A DNA stretch of 64,000 nt, taken from NCBI GenBank assembly GCA_013115145.1, contig JAAPAO010000042.1, positions 44,082 to 108,081 on the forward strand, read 5' to 3'. This document shows positions 45,165-57,043 of this stretch, in pieces (positions within the stretch are counted from its first letter, which is position 1; every line of letters starts with the position of its first letter). The notes below the pieces were generated by a model, which saw only the letters and a list, made by a program, of their open reading frames with translations, was not told the DNA's origin and did not search any database. The DNA is from Perkinsus chesapeaki ATCC PRA-425 (Eukaryota; Protista; Perkinsozoa). Made by a program: the position numbers and the translations under genes.

Positions 45165-47516
45165 CTACTCATCATGCAACACAACTTCGGTAGGCCATGA
45201 GCCATACTTGTTATTCCATTTTATATAGTCCTCGAGTTTGCCTTCACTTGGAGGGGTGTGGGCGAGGGCATCTTCAAGATCACCTTCGCAAAGTGGCCTG
45301 GGACTAACAGTAGCGCTGCCCTCATCTGCTGACAAACTAGCTAGGGCTTCTCGTATAGGCACCTGACTGCCACTGATCATGCTAAACCAGCTGGAATGGT
45401 ATCACCATCGCAGCGGTGCACATCAACTGTTTTATATCGCTACCAGAGTAACCTCGAGTACTTCCGGCAAGTCGATCGATCACACACTCATCGATTTGGG
45501 GTGCTTCAATTGACATACTGGAATGATGGAGGTGCAACAGTCGGTGAATTAGATATTTGCGTGCCTTCTGTCCAGGCAGAGGAGTGTAACTAACACTCCC
45601 TCAAACTCATCACCCGAACACGCCTTTTCGCCTCACAGTTTTTTTGGAAAACGTCTAAGTGCCGCAGCGTCTATCTGCCACGGCAAATTCGTGGCTCCAA
45701 GGAACAATATTCGCGACTCGGGCTTGCTGGTGATACCATCGAGAGCCGCAAGGAACTCATTCTTCAATCGCCGAGTTGATTCATGGTCACCCTCGGACCT
45801 GGCGCCAAGGACGCTATCAATCTGAAGGAAGCGATGGACAATCTGAGGACGCCGCGGAGAGTTGACCTCGTCTATGAAGATGACCGTGGGCTCGTAATGA
45901 TCCGCCACTTGAAAAAGTGTGTTAACCATTTTTTCGCTCTCGCCAATCCATTTGGAGAATAATGTGGAGGCAGACACGTTTATAAAGGTTGCATTTACTT
46001 TGGAGGCTATCCACCTCCCGAGCATTGTTTTACCGGTACCTTCAATACGGTGATAAAGGCGTAATTGGTATTCACTGTTGACCGCTGTCAGTTGTGTAAA
46101 GTCTTTAGTTGAGATTTCACGACCGAGGGCTTCTTTAAGGCCTTCAGAACAAGTTGAGAGAGACTCTAAACGGCCCGTCTAATAGACTCGAATTAAGTGA
46201 ACGGTTTATGAGTCATCATGGAGAATTGGAGAGTTGTTAAGTACAATGCCAAACAATTAACTAGCGCAGCAACGAACAGTGCATGCAAACAAGCAGCTCT
46301 TCATAGTTTAGTCATCGATGTGCAATCCGGTTCAATATATTATTAGATACTTGATGAGGTTGAATAACTAACCTGGTGGTCCGAAGAGTAGGATGCCTCG
46401 TGGCGGTCTTGTCAATGGTGATGCAAAAAGATGAGGAAACCGTTGAGGCATTATTAGAACCTCCGTTATCGTTTGCTTGGCGAACTTCAAACCTATAAGG
46501 TCGATCATGCATTTCACAGTATAAAAAGATACCAGCGATGTCCTCATCTCGAACCTTATTAGAGTCTGTCGGGCTTATTCGTAGTGCTTCTATGGCCTCT
46601 ACCATTTCTGGTTGCAAATGATCCAATGACGATGAGCCTGATACCACAGACTGGCGGAGATCAGTGGTTTGTCCCGCCACACTTCGTTTATTTTCATCAT
46701 CTTTCCTTGTCGACGATGCCCTGCAAGATACACCTTACTTTTCATGTACACTTCACAGACATACCCCTTCCTCAGTTGACCTCCGGAACCTGCTCTGGCG
46801 ATCCGTGACAGGAGACCATTAGCAGCATCATTAATAGTTGCCGACTCGGGTGAATTGCTTCGCTCATCTCGTCCTCGTTTGCTATGCATTCTACCATCTT
46901 CAAGGCCGAGCTCTGTTATTAGCGACTCGCCTAAGCTATCAGTATTGAACTCCTCAGTTGCTTCAAACTGCTGTTGCTGCTGGCCTGTTACCGACACCTG
47001 GCAAGATCTCCTTACTCCGTGGACCGGATTTAAAATGGCCGTGGGCGAGCGTACGCCTATAATAACATTACAAAGCATCCCCAGCTCAGTGAGATTCATC
47101 TCTATCTACTCTCAGCTACCAACTAAAGACATTACTGCTAGCGGCAGCGAAAACTCTATTCGTTGTGAACGGTAAAAGACCGAGGTGCTTACAATTTGCT
47201 GCCATAACAGCACGTCCTGTTTAACTCGGTCATTCGTGAAAACCCGAGGTCTTTCTTCCAACCATTTCCTCCCCAATAAACTAACAGTATATGCTTGGTC
47301 AGCTTTCGAGCTTGACTGCATGTCATCAGCCTCTATCAGGGCCATAGCTACCTGTTCACCAATAGCCAATGGGAAGAAGGATGGACCTCTCCTCACTTGA
47401 AGGCTCCTCATCAAATTTTTGTTACTGAGCTCATTGCACTGGTGCTGTGGATTTGTGCCATCCCGAATGTGCGCCAGCAAAGAGGGCAAAATGTCACCCT
47501 CAAACGGGGAGGACAT
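45165..47516 (-). CDS. FIGNL1: Fidgetin-like 1 AAA ATPase (spastin/katanin/fidgetin clade)
   Basis: [29 protein letters not shown]|TGKTMLG Walker [16 protein letters not shown]|IDS Walker [18 protein letters not shown], Vps4-C-type [10 protein letters not shown]. Confidence 0.88.
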
Positions 47517-47860
47517 ATTTCTGGAAAACTGCTACAGCAATCGTTTTTCACCGGAGAAATACATTTTCGAAAACTAATGGCTGCATTTAATGGGCCAAGC
47601 TAAGTATGATGTATCACTGAGACACGAACATCGTCACGCTCAAAGAAAGGTAGACTTCGCCAAGGGCGGGCGATGGCGCCATTCGCACCTTGTCGAGCGC
47701 TGCGTTATTTCCATCGTCCGACTGATGAGTTGATTTATGTTTGGAATCTGAGGTTGATGCTTGCACTTGCCATAGTCTTAGTTTTATAATGAAATGGCTC
47801 TCGGCAGCACTCCTCTCATCTTGGGTGATTATGACTATCCAATCGACCCTGAGTTGACCT

Positions 47861-48166
47861 ATGTTCCCAGTTTTCCACGTAATCGCTATCACTACTATTT
47901 TCAGTCACTTACTTTTTATCCCGACCACACAGTCTTCGGTTAGGAGAGATCACGAAGAAAATATCTATTATCAATGCCAATATGAGTTGCAGAGAGAGAG
48001 GAACTCTTTAACCGTGAAGTTATACGGTGGGCAGTGGGAACAGGCGGTGGAAGATTCGAAGGGTGTTCTTAAGGAGGGATCCCGTCGCATTCGTATGGCA
48101 GCGAACGGCCTTCACCTCACCTTTCATGCGGAGCGGAGGACACTAATCTACAAATTGAAGGAGTGA
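47861..48166 (+). CDS. Small intronless putative secreted protein
   Basis: 101-aa ORF with hydrophobic N-terminus MFPVFHVIAITTIFSHLLFIPTTQS. Confidence 0.45.
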   Translation: MFPVFHVIAITTIFSHLLFIPTTQSSVRRDHEENIYYQCQYELQRERNSLTVKLYGGQWEQAVEDSKGVLKEGSRRIRMAANGLHLTFHAERRTLIYKLKE

Positions 48167-48513
48167 CTAACATACATTATTTATTGTCCGACTAAATCGC
48201 TTTTTTGAGTTACCAAGTATGAATAAATTCGCCGACCGACACACACGGAAGTTGCTTCCAATGACTCAGGTGCCCGAGCGGTGGCGGCGATCGTGATTGA
48301 CTACCAACAAACTGCATAAGGATTGGAAACCATCATACTGACTGACTGCAATTATTCTTATTTGATATCTTAATCGTAATAGTCATTATTTTAACCAACA
48401 TCAGGTGTAGAGGGGCAACTAATTAGTAATCACACTCGAGAGGAACCCTCCTCCTCATTTTCCTTCATCAATCGACTGTCGCTAGCCGCGACTGCATAGG
48501 GGTCGTTTAAAAC

Positions 48514-51500
48514 CTACATATTGGATTCTGACACCTCTAGCTTCACAGTGTAAAACACTTACGTCTCCAAAGGCTTCAAATACAAGACCGGCCGGAAGAG
48601 AGAACAGGGCCACGCCGACCAGAGCCAAGATAACGCAGAGGCACTTACCCGGTGGAGTGAAGTCTACTAAGCCCCATTCACCTAAAACCGATGTGATGAC
48701 GATGGAGGCAGACGGTGAGCTTACCGCCGAGGAACACTGCAGTGTAATACATACTAGAAGGGATCGAATCGAATGGTTGACCGATCCACTTGGTGGAAAA
48801 ATCGCTTGTGTGTTCAAACTCGTAGAAGAGGCAAGATGCGAACAACCATATCTGAAGGTAAAAGATACTCTGGTGCGCAGCCGGAAGATTTTTACAATAG
48901 CAGCGAAGATACCGGTAGACAGAACAGACTCGCGGCACTCCGACCAAACCAATGACAGCCTCTGCCACGCAACCAGGAAGTGCTCTAATAGGAGAATCTA
49001 TACAGAAAGGAAGTCTGATGGAGAACAGAAAACTGTAAGCTTTGCGCACCCTGAAGATTCTGAAGACGCGGAAGATACTCGCGTCGAACTGCTGCGATGA
49101 GGGTTCGATGGCCAGAATGAAGCACTCTATCCAAAATGGTAGAATTGACATAAGGTCGACCAACCCCAGGAAAGATTTGAGATACTTTCCTCGTCGACAC
49201 CCGACCAGTGGATTCGCCGGGGAACTATACAGACGAGCAAGATAGTCAAACGTGAAGATGCTGACCTGATCGAGGCAAGTAGGAAAAACCGGCTGAGTCA
49301 GACTTACCGAGACAAGCTCGAAGTAGTTGAACATATCCTTGCCCATGATCGACAGAATCGCCGACTCGCTCTCCAGCAGAACAGCCACTATATTAAGTAA
49401 AATCAAAGCCACCATAAAAGCGCCATATAGCTTATTATGATTAACTAAGCAATGCGCCCGATAAACGAAGGTCCCTGAATAGAGATATGAATACAACCTT
49501 ACCAGCTACTTACTCTTGCGTCGCTCCGCTAGCTCTCTCATTTGAACTAAGCGAGTCTCCACGATGAGGCCTTCGAGTCTCTTCCTTACCATGTAGCGTC
49601 GTACGTGCTTTCCGATAACACCAGCGGCCTCTTTGCGTCGTTGCCTCTCACGAAGCCTCTCCCCTTTAAGCGCTGCAGTGAATGCTGCAGCCAGCAGACC
49701 AGCCGGCACTGCAGTGACGCCAACTGCAATGACGACCGTCAAAGCAAGGATAATCTTCCCACTAGGTGTGTAGTCGATGAGGGGGAAGTCGCCGGTGAGG
49801 TGGACCATGGCATACGGTACCATAGAAGATATAAGCGAGCTGTATCTCTCGGCCTGGGGAGTTCCAGGTGTACCGGCCAGCTCAGAATCATTGTGTTCAG
49901 CGAGCCACAACAGACCACCAAGGCACAGCCACATAGCCAGAACCACGTAAAGAGCGTTACTCAGGCACTTCCTCTGGGCCTTAACAACCCGAACGAAAAG
50001 TGCACAAGTCGACGAAAGGAACTCCAGGTTGATGATTCTCATCAACCTTAGTAGGCGGAATTCACCATCGTAGCGATCAGTCAAACTCCAACCGGTGAAG
50101 ACCGTCAACCACCAGGGGAGGATCGACAGGAGATCGGCGAGGGAGAGCAGTGTGCTGGCCTGGGCCCATCGCATCGATTGCGGACTGACAAATCCTCGAG
50201 GGCACCACTTCACATAATTTAGCGGCGCGCAGTAAATACGGAGAGAATAGTCCAGAGTGAAGGCCAGCACGACAAAGGTCTCAGCGATGCCGAAAGAGCA
50301 TCTAACCCACGCGGGCCAGGAGCTGTTGTAGGCCGGTAGGGTCTCGAGCACCGCCACTAGTGTGCTGATGACCAGACAGAATGCGAGCCATTTCTGGTAT
50401 CTTCGTGACCAATACTGCATGGTCGCACCTTTCACCCACTCGAGCCGCCAGCGGTTGTCAGACTCCTTGGGGTAGATCAATGTGAAGATGCGACGCTGAA
50501 ACGGCGACGGTGATGCATCACGGTGGGCAGCAGCAGCAGCAGCATCTGCTGGCGGGGCCGCGACCGCGAGTTGTTCCTGTCGAGGATCCTGTGACGGACT
50601 GTCGACTAGGAAAGGCTCCAACCTGAAGAGGAAATGAAGTTAATAGTAATAATAAAGTGGGATGATTTTGATAGTAAGTATCAATATATTATGTGCAATG
50701 TTGGAAATTTACCAACAGAGATTCAGCTATTATTGAGTAGGTGGTAGAACCATCCTTCAGTGTAATAATGCGTTTATCGTAATGACTTGTATCATATCAC
50801 TCAGCAGCACTGTGCTGTATAATAAACTCTCTGCAATGATCTGCGTGTTGGATCATGATCATGATTATTTATTATTATAAAATATACAACAGCGATACGG
50901 TTATAATATTTATATAACACTTCATAAAGTCGGGAAAAATGTCAGATATCGAAAGATACTAGCAAACTCACCTATCCTGCATCCCAGCCCCGAGGACACC
51001 CAGTGGGACAGCCACCACACCAACAGCGAACATGCCGAGGGCACCTGTAATGATCGAACCAGGAAGGGAATAGTCACCCAATGGAGATTCGCCAGATACA
51101 TTTAATAAAGTCAACCAAAGACTGCCATCTAATGTCGAGTAGTAGCGAGCAACCTGAGCTAAAAAATATCTTTACCAACTTCCCCGAAGCTGACCTTCAA
51201 GTCCGAGGCGTATCTTTCTGTGTAATACATAACCTCCGACATCAACAACCACAAACCCGCCGCCAGGCTCCCCATATAAATGAGCAGCGTTCTACTGTCA
51301 CTCAGAATCCTACGGAAGTACGCAAAACCGCAAAGATATCTTTCGAGCTTGAACACGCGCAGCAGCAAGAGAGCCCAAAGATACTCGTTATTCGGCATGA
51401 ACCAAAGCAACAGACCCGGCACCACCGCGATGACGTCAATCACACCATAAGGGCTGCCCAAGGCATACTCCCCCAGCCTGGCTTGAACCCTAGGGAACCT

Positions 51501-53230
51501 TGCGGCCCTGCTAGAATAGAATACAGTAGATGTGGCTGCGGAGTGGTTGTATTCTGGGAGTAGTGGGGCACAGTAGAGCCTTAGGAGGAGCTCGAGAGTG
51601 AAAAGAATTGTTATAACAACGCCTACTGGCGCCAGAAAGTAGCGATCAATTGGGGGTATCCAAGGTGATGGTAGACCACTTAAGAGGGTATGAATGATCG
51701 ATAATGGAACCATTATCCAACATATCAGAGACCTGATTAGAGTTCGTGGTTTGGAGGTTCGGAAAAGCTCAAGGAAGCCAGAATTTCACAAAATCTTCTT
51801 CCATTGGCGTATCTTTTCTGCCCATCAATAATTTTCAACAATTCCATAAAATGCAAAAAATACTGCTTTTTGAATAAATGCCATAAATTTTCCGAATACC
51901 CCCCGCTGAGGGTCGTGCTCAAAAAGGCGTTGAGAATCGCTCAAGCTCCTTCCACAATAGAAGTAAAACTGTGTTCTTGAAAACCTTATGGGCCCCGTAG
52001 TAAAGACTCTTTACAATACGATAATTTTCAAACATAAAACAGTAAGAGTTACAAGTGAGAACCAATGCCTAATAATAATTACTTCTTCGATGTCAACTCT
52101 CACGTTCACAGTGGTCAAGCTCTCGTTCGATTTAATATCCTGCTCCGAGCTCACCTCGCAAAGTCGCCAAGATCAACCTTCCATCCCACCCCAGACGCCC
52201 CAGAGGTCAATCTAACTATCATCTCCCCATGGTGCCCATCGATGGCCCGAACCATCCGATACAGTGCTTCGTGGTCCAAACCAATCCTGAGTACTCCACT
52301 CCCACTTGCACCGTTGGAATGGTCTCACCTTGCAGAGAGGAACTCCTGGAACTCCAAACGAGTGATGACCGGCAGCTGCTGTCGAGTGTATCCAGAGATC
52401 GGAGTGTGGCCGCCGGTGGAGAGGCATGCCTCGGGGGTGCTAGCCTCCAGTGAATCTTCAAGGTGAGTTTTTAAACCGGCACCGAGGAGACCTGTAAAAG
52501 GGTAGGGAGGGGAAATTAAGGAGCATAAGAAAGTGAGTTATGGATGAATGGTTGGAGACCGATATGCGGATATACCAGAAATCCAGCTGCCCACTTACCA
52601 GCTGGAATAGCGACTACTGCTGCCCCAAAGATGACAGCAAATACAGATATAACCTGGCCACCTGTAGAGTAGTCTAACAAATGCGGGAACTCTCCAAGGA
52701 GGACAATTACGGTGTGATACATCGACCGAGGTATAGATGAATATCTGCCAGAACGGTAAACTAGGATAAGTATTATTCATAGGATTATACCTGTTATAGC
52801 ACTGCTGCTGCTGCTCCTCGGGGGTGCCTTGGGGGCAATACACCATCAAAGGATTATCCTTCTCAAAGTAGTAGTACAGACTACTAAACACCAACCAACA
52901 GCTGAGGCCGACCGAACCTAAGATATGGATGATAATACTAATAACTGCACAGGAGATGATTGATGATCACCAGCAGTGAGGAACAGCATCTTCTGTTTGC
53001 GAAATGCTTCTATTAAATTCTCCACACGAGGACTTTCAGAGGCGATAAAGCTATCATCATCAAGAGGTATACCATATTGATCATAGTCATACTCAGTTTT
53101 CAAAGGAGTTGGAGAGAGGAGCGGTATGAGAATACATATCCATTGCGAGAATATAACATAACTCCAGCCCATCAACGGTACCAATATTGCCAAGCTAAGG
53201 TAGTATGGTCCAACTGCTAGCAGCAGTACC
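48514..53230 (-). CDS. Concatenated four-pore-domain cation channel built from Kv/KCNQ-like repeats with non-K+ acidic filters
   Basis: Four S5-P-S6 units with S6 VAIPAG, VAVPLG, TAVPAG, FSLPAG and pore loops LLGEFP, VSGESP, LTGDFP, LGGEWG; repeats II-IV have S1-S4 (LLLLRVFKLERY, FRLLRLMRII, FRVFRIFRIL); II-III and III-IV junctions join by phase-compatible GT-AG introns. Confidence 0.85.
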
Positions 53231-53445
53231 TAACAGACAGCCTTCCCCTCCCTATCGGTCCGCCAACAATGACTTTGGGAAATCCACAGTGGATTTGGTA
53301 GCACCAAATCTCTAGGTTAAGTAAAGCGTCACTCCACTCAATGGACACCTAATTCATTCCGGTTACTAAACGGGTTTGGGAGGAGCCAATTGGTGTCTTT
53401 ATTGTATTATTGTTAGTGTCATACACGTCATTGTTGTGTGAAGTA

Positions 53446-53700
53446 TCATACCGCTCCTTCCTCCCAAACTACCCAAATCTTCCTTTGCCGATGATGATGA
53501 TGATGCTCTTCTCCTTCTTCTTCCTCCCTATTACCATGCCACTCCTTTACTACTGCTACTCCCAACGCCGCAGTCAGCGCCAACGCCAAGGATAACTGAT
53601 AAGTTTGTAGTGTTATCCACATCCATAATGGTAATGATAGATTAATGGTATTGGTTATTATACCAAACACACCAAATGATACGATACCAAAAAATGATAA
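53446..53700 (-). other. Transmembrane-coding fragment paralogous to 56777-57043
   Basis: YQLSLALALTAALGVAVVKEWHGNREE versus FQSLSAILGFGVICGVAVVKEWHGDREE; ~75 nt of clear nucleotide similarity. Confidence 0.55.
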
Positions 53701-53761
53701 TATTAAATCAGACCTTAATAATGCAACAAGTCGGGCCTACAGGAATTAACAGCTAGAGGTG

Positions 53762-54031
53762 TCAGAAAAGGGTGTTGAGTATTACTCTATACGTAGACAT
53801 TCTTCCTTTATATAAACCATCATTGAGTACTGCGGGGGGCAGTTTATCATTACTGTTAATATTTGAATCGATACCGGCCTCCGTGGTGGCCAGCGGCGGC
53901 CTACCATCCCCTACAACTTGGTATTGACCTATTTTATCTAGATGGTGATGAGGACCGAGTAAAGGAGCATCGAGAGACAATGCGGAGGATGGGATATCAT
54001 CTTGAGGACGCTTTAATAATAGGGATGACAT
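53762..54031 (-). CDS. Probable N-terminal exon of a membrane protein (assignment to channel or neighbour unresolved)
   Basis: MSSLLLKRPQDDIPSSALSLDAPLLGP... low-complexity N-tail with a DxxLL motif. Confidence 0.3.
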   Translation of the reverse strand: MSSLLLKRPQDDIPSSALSLDAPLLGPHHHLDKIGQYQVVGDGRPPLATTEAGIDSNINSNDKLPPAVLNDGLYKGRMSTYRVILNTLF

Positions 54032-54243
54032 AAGCCTTAAATTATAAGATATAAGTTTCCAAGCCATAATACTTATTAACTTATACAACACAAGACGAGC
54101 CGAGCATCGTTATATTGGCCATAAGACCTCTCCGTGAAGAATAGAGCTGGTCAGGTATGTGCTGCTTTTGATAATATTCTGTCGACCGACTACGAGCAAA
54201 TGGTTCGTAACAGAACTCGTTTAAGTCTTCTTCAACCTCTTCT

Positions 54244-54780
54244 TTACCTCTTTCCATGATAGATTCCTGGTAGAGCACAAGCCAATCCTATGTAATAAAG
54301 AGATGAGACAGCAAATGCAGGATTAACTTCTGGGTAAAGTAGTATATCGCCCACCAATTCAGTTGATGGAAGGATACTACCAAGGTTGAAAGCTTCACCA
54401 TTAAGGCGGACCAAAGAAAATCTTTGTGGTGGGAAATGAGCAATGATATGCCTGGCCAATAGGAAGTTCATGAATCTCTCATAGACATCATTACGACTCG
54501 CCTGGTCCCACTGGAGACGCACGCCACCAGCTGGGCTTACAATATATGGCACCTCCACCTGTACGGTCTCCTCTGGGGAGGCAAGGACGAATACCGAGTT
54601 TTAAGCATCTAGTCAGAACATCATCCTAATATCAACTTGAGCATCAATACGACTATGATAAAGAGTTCCACTGTAGGGTGATGATGGGGGAGGTTGAGGC
54701 GTGGTGGTGGTGGCATTGGTTGTATCGCAAATGCATAGATGCAATACAACCGAAAAGAATACAACAAGTATGCGAAGCAT
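54244..54780 (-). pseudogene. Secreted-protein pseudogene, paralog of 62777-63331
   Basis: Signal peptide MLRILVVFFSVVLHLCIC, Thr/Pro linker, gap-free alignment to the paralog, but in-frame TGA (54613-54615) and TAA (54601-54603). Confidence 0.8.
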
Positions 54781-54984
54781 TTGTTACTGACAAGGGAAAT
54801 GTAAACTCCACCAAGACATTTCTGACACGACAACGCAGATGGTTAATCCTGATGGATTAATCATCAGAAAATGTCAGCTTAGTACTATAGAGAGATACAA
54901 CAACGGGCACGAGACATCAATCATAACACCTACTCGACTGAACTCATGAAAAGCCTCAAAAAGTAGTACTACTCAAGCGAAAAA

Positions 54985-56330
54985 TCATCCTGCGGGAGTT
55001 CCTTCATCCAAGGCGCGCGTTCCTGCAAGAACGACGCGGCGAGCAAGCGCTTCCCAGCACCGGCCAGTGTGAAGGAAAGCATCCACGTCGCAAGGAAACC
55101 AAAGGGGTCGGCGTCTCAAGCTCAGTTTGGACCGCGGGGGGTGCGAGCCAGCCAACCCTCTCTCGCAGCAATTATATGACCAGCTATCGATGCCAACCAC
55201 CTCCGCATGCATTCCCAATGAGCTATTGTTGCACCACGTGCTTAGAATAACAATAAAGCTTCGACGAGGCCTTTCTGACCTCGGACTCTTTGAGATGTTA
55301 CAAAGGAGAGGTCGCTGGAAGAGCGGCCCACATGTCATGATCTTCGCAGCTGATAGAGCTCAGCTTCACGTATACGCGGGATTGGATATTTTGCTGAGAT
55401 GGCTCATGCGAAATCCGTTAGCCTTATCACTTTCCTTTCCCTCAGCTGAGCTGAACATGAAGAGTTTTGGGAAAGAGAGGTCTCAAATAATAATAGTGAT
55501 GAAACAATTAATACACCACAGGGCACCGGACTTTCACCACTCGTACCGGGTAGTCCAGCACCGCATTAGCTGTCGAGATGTTACTCAGAGCTGAGCTTCC
55601 GGCCGTATCTTTGCTTGGAGTAGTGGCATTTTTGACACTCGTCTGTTTGACTGTTACGCTTCTGAATGGTTGAGGAGGCTAGTGCTTCTTTGCTCAATCC
55701 CCAGTCATCGGAATTCCTCGATTCGTTCAATTCATCATCATCTTCATCATCAGCCGGCTTAGCACATGAACGAAGAGTATACTATTGAGAAGGAAGAGGT
55801 CGCATATGGGCAAACCTCGATGAAGTTGCAAATAGACTACAAGTAGATTTGATGCCGTCATAACAGGTTTGGTGATGATGATCGAAGTAATCGAAGAATA
55901 TTAAACTTACCACCACCACCAGCAGCAGCAACAGATGGTGGTTCCGCTAATAGATACGCGGTGAATAGCTACGACGGAGTGTGATAGCGTTTTAATGCTA
56001 CTTCTATTATGACTAGTAATAGGTAGTTCTACCACCACTGCAGTGGAAGGAGGTAATAAATACCCTGAATAGAGGACCTTGAAGAAGTGGCAAACACTAC
56101 GGTAGGAGAGAAGGCGATTCGAGGATGAACAGGCGTTTGAACACCATCTAAATGCAACATCCAACAGCAGCTCAACAGGATCTCAGACCTACCTGCGTGC
56201 TACTTAAGTGAGTATCGATGCTGCCCAGCGTATACCTGAATTGGCGGCATATAATTTTGCCTGAATGCCAGGAATGTGGAGACAATTATCTTTGGGAATA
56301 GTCAACATATCATAACAATCATCCGACTGG
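54985..56330 (-). CDS. Hypothetical multi-exon protein
   Basis: Splice-bounded open segments including an acidic DDEDDDE exon and DVAFRWCSNAC...SVCHFFKVLYSGYLLPP. Confidence 0.3.
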
Positions 56331-56776: not shown

Positions 56777-57043
56777 CTATACCTCATCAGATCCTCCTTT
56801 CCGATGATGTTTCACCGAGTGTCTCGCTTTAGTACCCTGTTGTGGTCGCCAATCTCCTTGCAAGGATAACGGCCTCTGTGAATGCCTCCTTTGTTCTCCG
56901 CCTTCCTCCCTATCACCATGCCACTCCTTTACTACGGCTACACCGCAGATGACGCCAAAGCCAAGGATAGCTGATAGGCTTTGAAACTGATGGAACCATT
57001 TAGTGGTACCAAGAGGAGCATCCTCCAAGTCGAAGGTTTCCAT
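56777..57043 (-). CDS. Terminal exon of a membrane protein (TM helix plus charged tail)
   Basis: AG-preceded exon ending ...GFGVICGVAVVKEWHGDREEGG...GSDEV-stop; upstream exons not identified. Confidence 0.4.
   Translation of the reverse strand: METFDLEDAPLGTTKWFHQFQSLSAILGFGVICGVAVVKEWHGDREEGGEQRRHSQRPLSLQGDWRPQQGTKARHSVKHHRKGGSDEV

Follow-up and report, generated by a model that had tools for sequence, protein, structure and literature searches.

Channels of the Cav/Nav/NALCN lineage, which carry four units of six transmembrane helices (6TM) in one polypeptide, are usually seen as the sole four-domain answer for fast Ca2+/Na+ signalling. In CNG and NaK pores, which share the K-channel fold, an acidic residue just after the filter glycine (TIGE and TVGDG, respectively) makes the filter non-selective and Ca2+-binding. 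TIGE has been named as the only clade-level departure from TVGY/FG found (PMC7576140). Subunits of the K-channel superfamily have been concatenated into one chain independently in other cases, for example CNGK (PMC7576140, PMC6259924), which is usually seen as a K+-selective curiosity. Here we analyse a gene on the minus strand of a 64,000-nucleotide (nt) stretch of Perkinsus chesapeaki ATCC PRA-425 (contig JAAPAO010000042.1, positions 44,082 to 108,081; hereafter the window, to which all coordinates refer). The gene encodes four linked Kv-like repeats with an acidic residue in each filter. Its product is probably an independently concatenated, voltage-sensor-bearing, pseudo-tetrameric cation channel with 24 transmembrane helices (24-TM), predicted to be Ca2+-permeable or non-selective and belonging to a widespread protist family.

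One gene with four pore modules and an acidic ring

Read from stop to stop, the minus strand from 48.4 to 54.1 kb holds four pore modules where the original prediction had placed them, with the ring codons exact to the base (Table 1). The filters of repeats I–IV read LLGEFP, VSGESP, LTGDFP and LG/GEWG, the slash marking a 43-nt, phase-1 intron (48724-48682) that splits the last filter as had been proposed. About 25 residues downstream of each filter lies an S6 motif (AIPAG, AVPLG, AVPAG and SLPAG), bearing out the expected (A/V/S)xPAG/PLG pattern. Three single exons matched Pfam Ion_trans above the cut-off (E 1.4e-6, 4.9e-6 and 3.5e-10), and the annotated P. olseni orthologue (P0155, 1293 amino acids (aa)) matched it in four stretches (E 5.8e-40). 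S4 carries three Arg/Lys in each of repeats II–IV. In repeat I, S4 of Perkinsus reads QWICILI where the family motif is QWLRxLR, so the repeat I sensor of Perkinsus has lost its arginines.

The acidic ring was examined in 69 four-repeat proteins aligned to one repeat hidden Markov model (HMM). In every repeat, the acidic residue that immediately follows the conserved filter glycine occupies one and the same homologous column, and the E/E/D/E quartet of the original prediction was found in 62 of the 69 proteins. E/E/D/D occurred in three (P. olseni and one other), K/E/D/E in three and A/Q/N/A in one. Per-repeat alignments showed the G-D of repeat III, the E of repeat II and the W of GEW to be invariant. 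The K/E/D/E proteins (P0120, P0136 and P0142), with lysine in repeat I, are reminiscent of lysine-bearing Na+-selective rings. In the A/Q/N/A protein (P0026) all four acidic residues are neutralized, and such a joint loss in one member fits residues that work as a unit.

The gene model was built by pairing conserved blocks between the window and L001, a Logan contig from another Perkinsus species that carries an orthologue with about 66% protein identity, and by scoring every GT-AG junction jointly in both. A single best junction resulted for each gap, identical in position and phase in the two sequences. The model has 15 GT-AG introns (L001 guided the placement of 14 of them), of which 11 measure 39–53 nt and the other four 107, 243, 349 and 422 nt. 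One frame is kept through 3981 coding bases, encoding 1326 aa, and the only stop is the terminal one. Splice phases thus permit one polypeptide, as had been proposed from the sequence, in the window and in L001 alike. The span first given for the gene, 48514-53230, stands as part of it, but the gene is longer: the N terminus and S1–S4 of repeat I lie at 54031-53116 and the stop codon at 48432-48430. P0155 is colinear with the model from end to end at 64% identity, and the proteins of the three Perkinsus species are colinear at 64–67% identity.

The deposited P. chesapeaki protein KAF4675814.1 (P0004, 1209 aa), labelled 'hypothetical protein / Ion transport domain-containing protein', is 99.6–99.9% identical to the new model over the overlap. 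It omits S1–S2 of repeat II, a block conserved in L001, and starts in an unrelated exon (57043-56780). On sequence grounds, the 1326-aa model corrects this annotation. An end of exon 2 at 53551 (giving 1300 aa) was dropped; we prefer 53473 because the extra stretch is in frame in both deposited annotations and in L001. This stretch is a Glu/His-rich insert, GNREEEEGEEHHHHHRQRK (53547-53473, minus strand), in the S2–S3 loop of repeat I; the insert varies in length, with 26 aa in P. chesapeaki and 15 aa in P. olseni and L001.

About 3 kb upstream, the open reading frame (ORF) at 56780-57043 on the minus strand, the start of the deposited gene, contains a 40-aa stretch with 52% identity to the S2–loop segment of repeat I, together with a 31-nt match at 97% identity (56902-56932 against 53520-53550). 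This upstream ORF resembles an incomplete copy of one segment of the channel gene, or an exon of another gene. The introns at 53472-53230, 52154-51733 and 50971-50623 are 243–422 nt long, two of them AT-rich, where the L001 counterparts are 43–51 nt. Their extra DNA has no second copy elsewhere in the window. A tRNA origin was discarded, ARAGORN having found no tRNA in 47000-55500.

Table 1 Features of the channel gene in window coordinates (a slash within a motif marks an intron)
Feature	Position	Strand	Remarks
Whole channel gene, P. chesapeaki	48430..54031	-	16 exons, 1326 aa
Exons 1-4	54031-53786, 53736-53473, 53229-52971, 52917-52791	-	comparative model with L001
Exons 5-8	52744-52599, 52491-52329, 52286-52155, 51732-51195	-	comparative model with L001
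Exons 9-12	51153-50972, 50622-49514, 49474-49308, 49265-49050	-	comparative model with L001
Exons 13-16	48997-48896, 48851-48725, 48681-48563, 48513-48430 (stop included)	-	comparative model with L001
Stop codon	48432-48430	-	
Ring residue, repeat I, Glu (GAG, in GEFP)	52690..52692	-	E in 65/69 four-repeat relatives
Ring residue, repeat II, Glu (GAA, in GESP)	51088..51090	-	E in 68/69
Ring residue, repeat III, Asp (GAC, in GDFP)	49788..49790	-	D in 68/69, never E
Ring residue, repeat IV, Glu (GAA, in GEWG)	48677..48679	-	E in 65/69, D in 3/69
Repeat I	52475..53709	-	
Repeat I S1	53709-53653	-	
Repeat I S2	53628-53548	-	
Repeat I S3 and uncharged S4	53205-53116	-	
Repeat I S4–S5 linker and S5	53025-52865	-	
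Repeat I pore helix and filter LLGEFP	52740-52666	-	
Repeat I S6 with AIPAG	52662-52475	-	
Repeat II	50983..51732	-	Pfam Ion_trans E 4.9e-6; 66% identity to L001 over 182 aa
Repeat II S1–S5	exon 51732-51195	-	
Repeat II S4 LWALLLLRVFKLERYL	51380-51333	-	
Repeat II filter NVSGESPLGDYS	51120-51067	-	
Repeat II S6 with AVPLG	51060-50983	-	
Repeat III, one single exon	49514..50622	-	Pfam match; AlphaFold2 model pLDDT 83.3
Repeat III S4 GEFRLLRLMRIINLEF	50066-50019	-	
Repeat III filter HLTGDFPLIDYT	49814-49767	-	
Repeat III S6 with AVPAG	49760-49680	-	
IQ-like helix AAGVIGKHVRRYMVRKRL after repeat III	49628-49575	-	
Repeat IV	48563..49474	-	
Repeat IV S4 ASIFRVFRIFR/ILLLEHF	49082-48977	-	intron-split
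Repeat IV filter FLG/GEWGLVDFT	48752-48656	-	intron-split
Repeat IV S6 with SLPAG	48649-48569	-	

Kv affinity of the repeats and predicted fold of the chain

Profile searches against the PDB agreed with the Kv scaffold of the original prediction. The best matches of repeats I–IV were Kv4.2/4.3, Kv7.1–7.5, Kv2.1 and Kv1.x chains (E 1e-24 to 1e-30), aligned from S1 through S6, and repeat III alone retrieved at E<=1 only Kv chains and one chance match near E=0.9. Cav chains ranked lower, in the repeat II and IV profiles, and their best stretch ended at about profile position 160–190, short of the pore loop and S6. Among the listed matches of the four profiles there was no Nav, BacNav, TPC, CNG or HCN chain. 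By this similarity ranking, the nearest matches of the repeats are Kv chains and not domains I–IV of Cav/Nav.

Structure prediction gave a similar picture. In the AlphaFold model of window repeat III (predicted local distance difference test (pLDDT) 83.3), the S4–S5 linker is helical (helix 200-215), and the pore helix (263-276) is followed by nine coil residues (GDFPLIDYT) and then S6; the top 50 Foldseek matches of this model were all Kv. For the P. olseni orthologue, modelled at full length (pLDDT 74.5, predicted TM-score (pTM) 0.77), each repeat shows a single pore helix that about ten coil residues separate from S6; a second pore helix is predicted in none. As expected for the proposed pseudo-tetramer, this model aligns along its whole length with Nav1.7, Cav1.2, Cav3.3 and NALCN (TMq 0.51–0.59 over about 1370 columns). 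Together, these profiles and models indicate that the repeats are Kv-like and that the predicted assembly is of the 24-TM kind.

The HMMER alignment of repeat III to KCNQ3 extends beyond S6 into the IQ-like stretch; in KCNQ3, we take the stretch past S6 to be the calmodulin-binding helix A. A strict IQ motif was present in the III–IV linker (median 55 aa) of 10 of 62 four-repeat proteins and in at most one for any other region, and Perkinsus, Symbiodinium and Mesostigma have IQ-like variants in this linker. As a lead only, Pfam IQ occurs in 35% of the members of the nearest Atlas cluster. The conserved IQ-like helix behind S6 of repeat III may bind calmodulin, and calmodulin control of the channel is a reasonable guess. 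One protein, P0047, has a canonical EF-hand pair in the I–II linker (residues 285-346, Pfam E 1e-13). An EF-hand pair in this linker was rejected as a family trait, since none of the 32 other members scanned has one.

Distribution and age of the family

With repeat III as the query, phmmer was run exhaustively against 1.84 billion representative proteins and returned 1271 relatives at E<=1e-3, 65 of them at E<=1e-30. A word-index search with repeat III alone had returned three proteins only, owing to its length window. The filter quartet recurs beyond Perkinsus, with the same position-specific signatures in nearly all multi-repeat proteins of the best 150 relatives: N(L/F)FGE(F/Y)PL in repeat I, NLSGE(A/S)PLxDY(T/S) in repeat II, HLTGD(Y/F)PLxDYT in repeat III and FLGGEW(A/G)xxDFT in repeat IV. 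In nearly all of these proteins, S6 of every repeat carries an (I/V)PxG motif.

Members were found in P. olseni, in Symbiodinium species (auto-named 'Shal'), in transcript assemblies with complete ORFs from the dinoflagellates Biecheleria, Polykrikos and Protoceratium, in the streptophyte (green) alga Mesostigma viride and in the apusomonad Thecamonas trahens (XP_013759166.1, labelled 'ion transporter'). Among relatives, complete four-repeat ORFs are known from transcripts (Trinity, MMETSP and TSA), and a genomic contig encodes one relative in an ORF of 1153 aa without interruption, so four repeats per polypeptide are no mere splicing assumption. The single polypeptide of the original prediction is thus seen in relatives as well as in the colinear P. 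olseni protein. We regard the channel, as judged from these homologues, as a widespread conserved protist family and not a Perkinsus oddity.

The age of the four-repeat chain was addressed with a tree of 125 repeats, comprising four from each of 28 family members, four from P0101 and nine single-unit GYG channels; for Cav, Nav, BacNav, TPC, CNG and HCN, which the tree leaves out, the PDB profile ranking and the fold comparison stand in. Repeat IV formed one clade (support 99), as did repeat III (support 88), and 25 of 28 repeat I and 25 of 28 repeat II sequences fell in well-supported clades. Branching within the repeat clades is parallel, and the four-repeat chain is therefore older than the split of the taxa sampled. 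For the order of duplication, the free tree weakly united repeats III and IV with Kv against repeats I and II (support 83), and a forced grouping of repeats I and III was not rejected (approximately unbiased test, p-AU 0.555).

P0101, a 1493-aa protein from an ENA metagenome contig, has four repeats with intact GYGD/GYGN K+ filters and four Ion_trans and four Ion_trans_2 matches in Pfam, with no cyclic-nucleotide-binding domain (CNBD). It was considered as an intermediate between Kv and the family and rejected, as its four repeats group with one another in a clade of recent origin, next to single-unit Kv channels including the bacterial P0002; the tree indicates a separate recent concatenation of a Kv-like subunit. 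P0002 (L002 6001-7683, bacterial contig GCA_013573015.1; 560 aa), the nearest single-unit relative that the word-index search found, is a channel of the GYGD kind whose hinge reads PAG; it seemingly has an extra voltage-sensor-like half (residues 28-180) before the full 6TM unit.

Full-text literature searches with accessions, motifs and descriptive phrases returned nothing relevant to the family, which seems undescribed in the literature searched. Sequences of Perkinsus marinus and Thecamonas appear in a 2018 survey of four-domain channels that used Nav, Cav, NALCN and Cch1 as seeds; their S4 is canonical, unlike that of the family, and none of the family motifs is in the survey's supplement. 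A 2020 survey of Kv-like channels covers one- and two-repeat forms only, with TVGYG; its supplement lacks the family motifs, and XP_013759166.1 is not among the Thecamonas accessions displayed there. The family slipped between a survey seeded with Cav/Nav and another restricted to one- and two-repeat Kv-like channels.

Proposed mechanism, rival explanations and known systems

These features allow us to propose how the channel might work. Each linked repeat is a 6TM unit of the Kv type, with three arginines in S4 (except in Perkinsus, whose repeat I has lost them), a helical S4–S5 linker and a single pore helix, from which a short filter loop leads to S6 and its PxG hinge. In place of the K+ filter TVGYG stand (T/S/F/G)-G-[E/D]-x-P in repeats I–III and G-G-E-W in repeat IV, which would line the mouth of a K-channel-shaped pore with an asymmetric E/E/D/E ring. 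If CNG and NaK are a guide, the ring would be expected to abolish K+ selectivity and to create a divalent-cation site. As G-[E/D]-x-P fits the CNG/NaK pattern, the resulting pore is expected to be Ca2+-permeable or non-selective for cations, with gating by the S4 sensors. The four-repeat layout would derive from concatenated Kv-like subunits, most likely in an event separate from the Cav/Nav/NALCN lineage.

Several points weigh against this proposal. The one argument for the selectivity is the analogy with CNG and NaK, the geometry of the ring is taken from a predicted model, and the filter can be aligned to TVGYG in two ways, ungapped in our reading and gapped in HMMER. The uncharged S4 in repeat I of Perkinsus may mean unusual gating. 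The likeness to Kv could be ancestry retained in a deep sister of the canonical four-domain channels. The locus appears in none of the listed RNA runs, two runs of the same species giving only two stray fragments, of 18 and 33 bases; as no public run covers it, transcription in P. chesapeaki is inferred. A small risk to novelty comes from Fux et al. 2018, who quote an 'EEDE' site among canonical algal channels, credited to Verret 2010.

A first rival explanation starts from the deep sister. Here the family would be a very divergent member or sister of Cav/Nav/NALCN, fused once, with the Kv-like pore and S6 hinge as retained ancestral characters. The superposition of the whole predicted chain on Nav, Cav and NALCN suits this idea, but a second pore helix is predicted in no repeat. 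Cav chains do turn up in the repeat II and IV searches through their voltage sensors, yet their best stretches stop short of the pore loop and S6, whereas the Kv matches are stronger and full length. The III–IV linker, at a median of 55 aa, resembles the 53–57 aa quoted for canonical channels (PMC6259924), and the grouping of repeats I and III is not rejected; however, P. marinus and Thecamonas own canonical four-domain channels with quite different S4 sequences, and the 2018 survey with its four canonical seeds missed the family. On balance, we consider this origin unlikely.

The same verdict, put a little more firmly, applies to a four-repeat Kv-kind channel that passes mainly K+/Na+, or a non-conducting voltage/Ca2+ sensor, in which the ring would serve block or regulation rather than Ca2+ permeation. 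GYG is kept in no repeat, and the D of repeat III and the E of repeats I, II and IV are nearly invariant from Thecamonas to alveolates; the CNG and NaK pores, where an acidic residue at the same position gives a non-selective, Ca2+-binding filter, also speak for permeation. These points outweigh, in our view, the Kv character of the scaffold, the hinge and all best matches, the ring lysine of the KEDE variants, which recalls Na+-selective rings, and the one member without the whole ring (AQNA). An artefact of the gene model, hiding several single-repeat genes or a decaying pseudogene, is hardly credible. It would accord with the missing RNA coverage and with the difference between the deposited annotation and the new model, but not with a single frame free of internal stops, identical junctions that keep the frame in L001, colinear proteins in three Perkinsus species, or the complete four-repeat ORFs in transcripts and in the intron-free genomic ORF of relatives.

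We therefore favour an independently concatenated 24-TM cation channel, and are evenly divided over a fuller version of that reading. In this version, the 24-TM single chain would have been invented a third time in this family, independently and long ago, before apusomonads, green algae and alveolates split. A fused Kv-type tetramer would have exchanged its K+ filter for a fixed E/E/D/E ring and provided voltage-gated, calmodulin-tuned Ca2+ entry, converging on the Cav/Nav design from a different pore architecture, with the KEDE variants maybe converging on Na+ selectivity. A second widespread four-domain family would be a natural replicate of the Cav/Nav/NALCN evolutionary experiment, on a K-channel pore, and would open to direct test how a K-type pore functions with an acidic ring and what keeps aspartate constant in repeat III. 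The family would also be an unrecognized candidate route of Ca2+ entry in dinoflagellates (including coral symbionts), the Perkinsus parasites of shellfish, deep-branching green algae and apusomonads.

Compared with known systems, the family is closest in its units to Kv channels (Kv4/Shal, Kv7/KCNQ, Kv2 and Kv1), sharing the 6TM unit, the arginine-bearing S4, the helical S4–S5 linker, the single pore helix, the short loop to S6 and the PxG hinge of S6 (PAG in KCNQ; IPAG, VPLG, VPAG and LPAG here). Kv channels, however, are built from separate single-unit subunits, whereas here four units are fused in one frame and have diverged by position, and none of the four retains TVGYG/TVGFG, an acidic residue following the conserved glycine instead. 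With Cav/Nav/NALCN the family shares four 6TM units in one polypeptide, an asymmetric acidic ring formed by the four repeats, a superposable predicted whole-chain fold and a short III–IV linker. Sequence similarity to those channels is limited to the voltage sensors and S5, and neither their second pore helix (P1–P2) nor the TxExW motif or any other T-x-[E/D/K/A]-x-W filter is seen in the predicted models and motifs of the repeats.

The closest analogue of the filter is of the CNG/NaK type, with G-E/D after the pore helix, rather than the TxExW loop of Cav/Nav: CNG (TIGE) and NaK (TVGDG) have Glu/Asp at the position of the GYG tyrosine, and G-[E/D]-x-P mirrors G-E-T-P. The long helical S4–S5 linker has the Kv form and not the short form of CNG/HCN, and no CNG, HCN or NaK chain was among the listed best profile matches. 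Pfam detected no CNBD in P0155 or in the 32 family members scanned; Ion_trans was the sole match throughout, apart from IQ, Ion_trans_2 and RETICULATA-like matches in single or paired members. TPC chains differ in dimerizing with two 6TM repeats each, against four repeats here, and none was among the listed profile matches. Other concatenations such as CNGK keep GYG-type filters, and the CNGK repeats are near-identical, with a CNBD on each, whereas the repeats of the family described here are old, position-specific and acidic-ringed.

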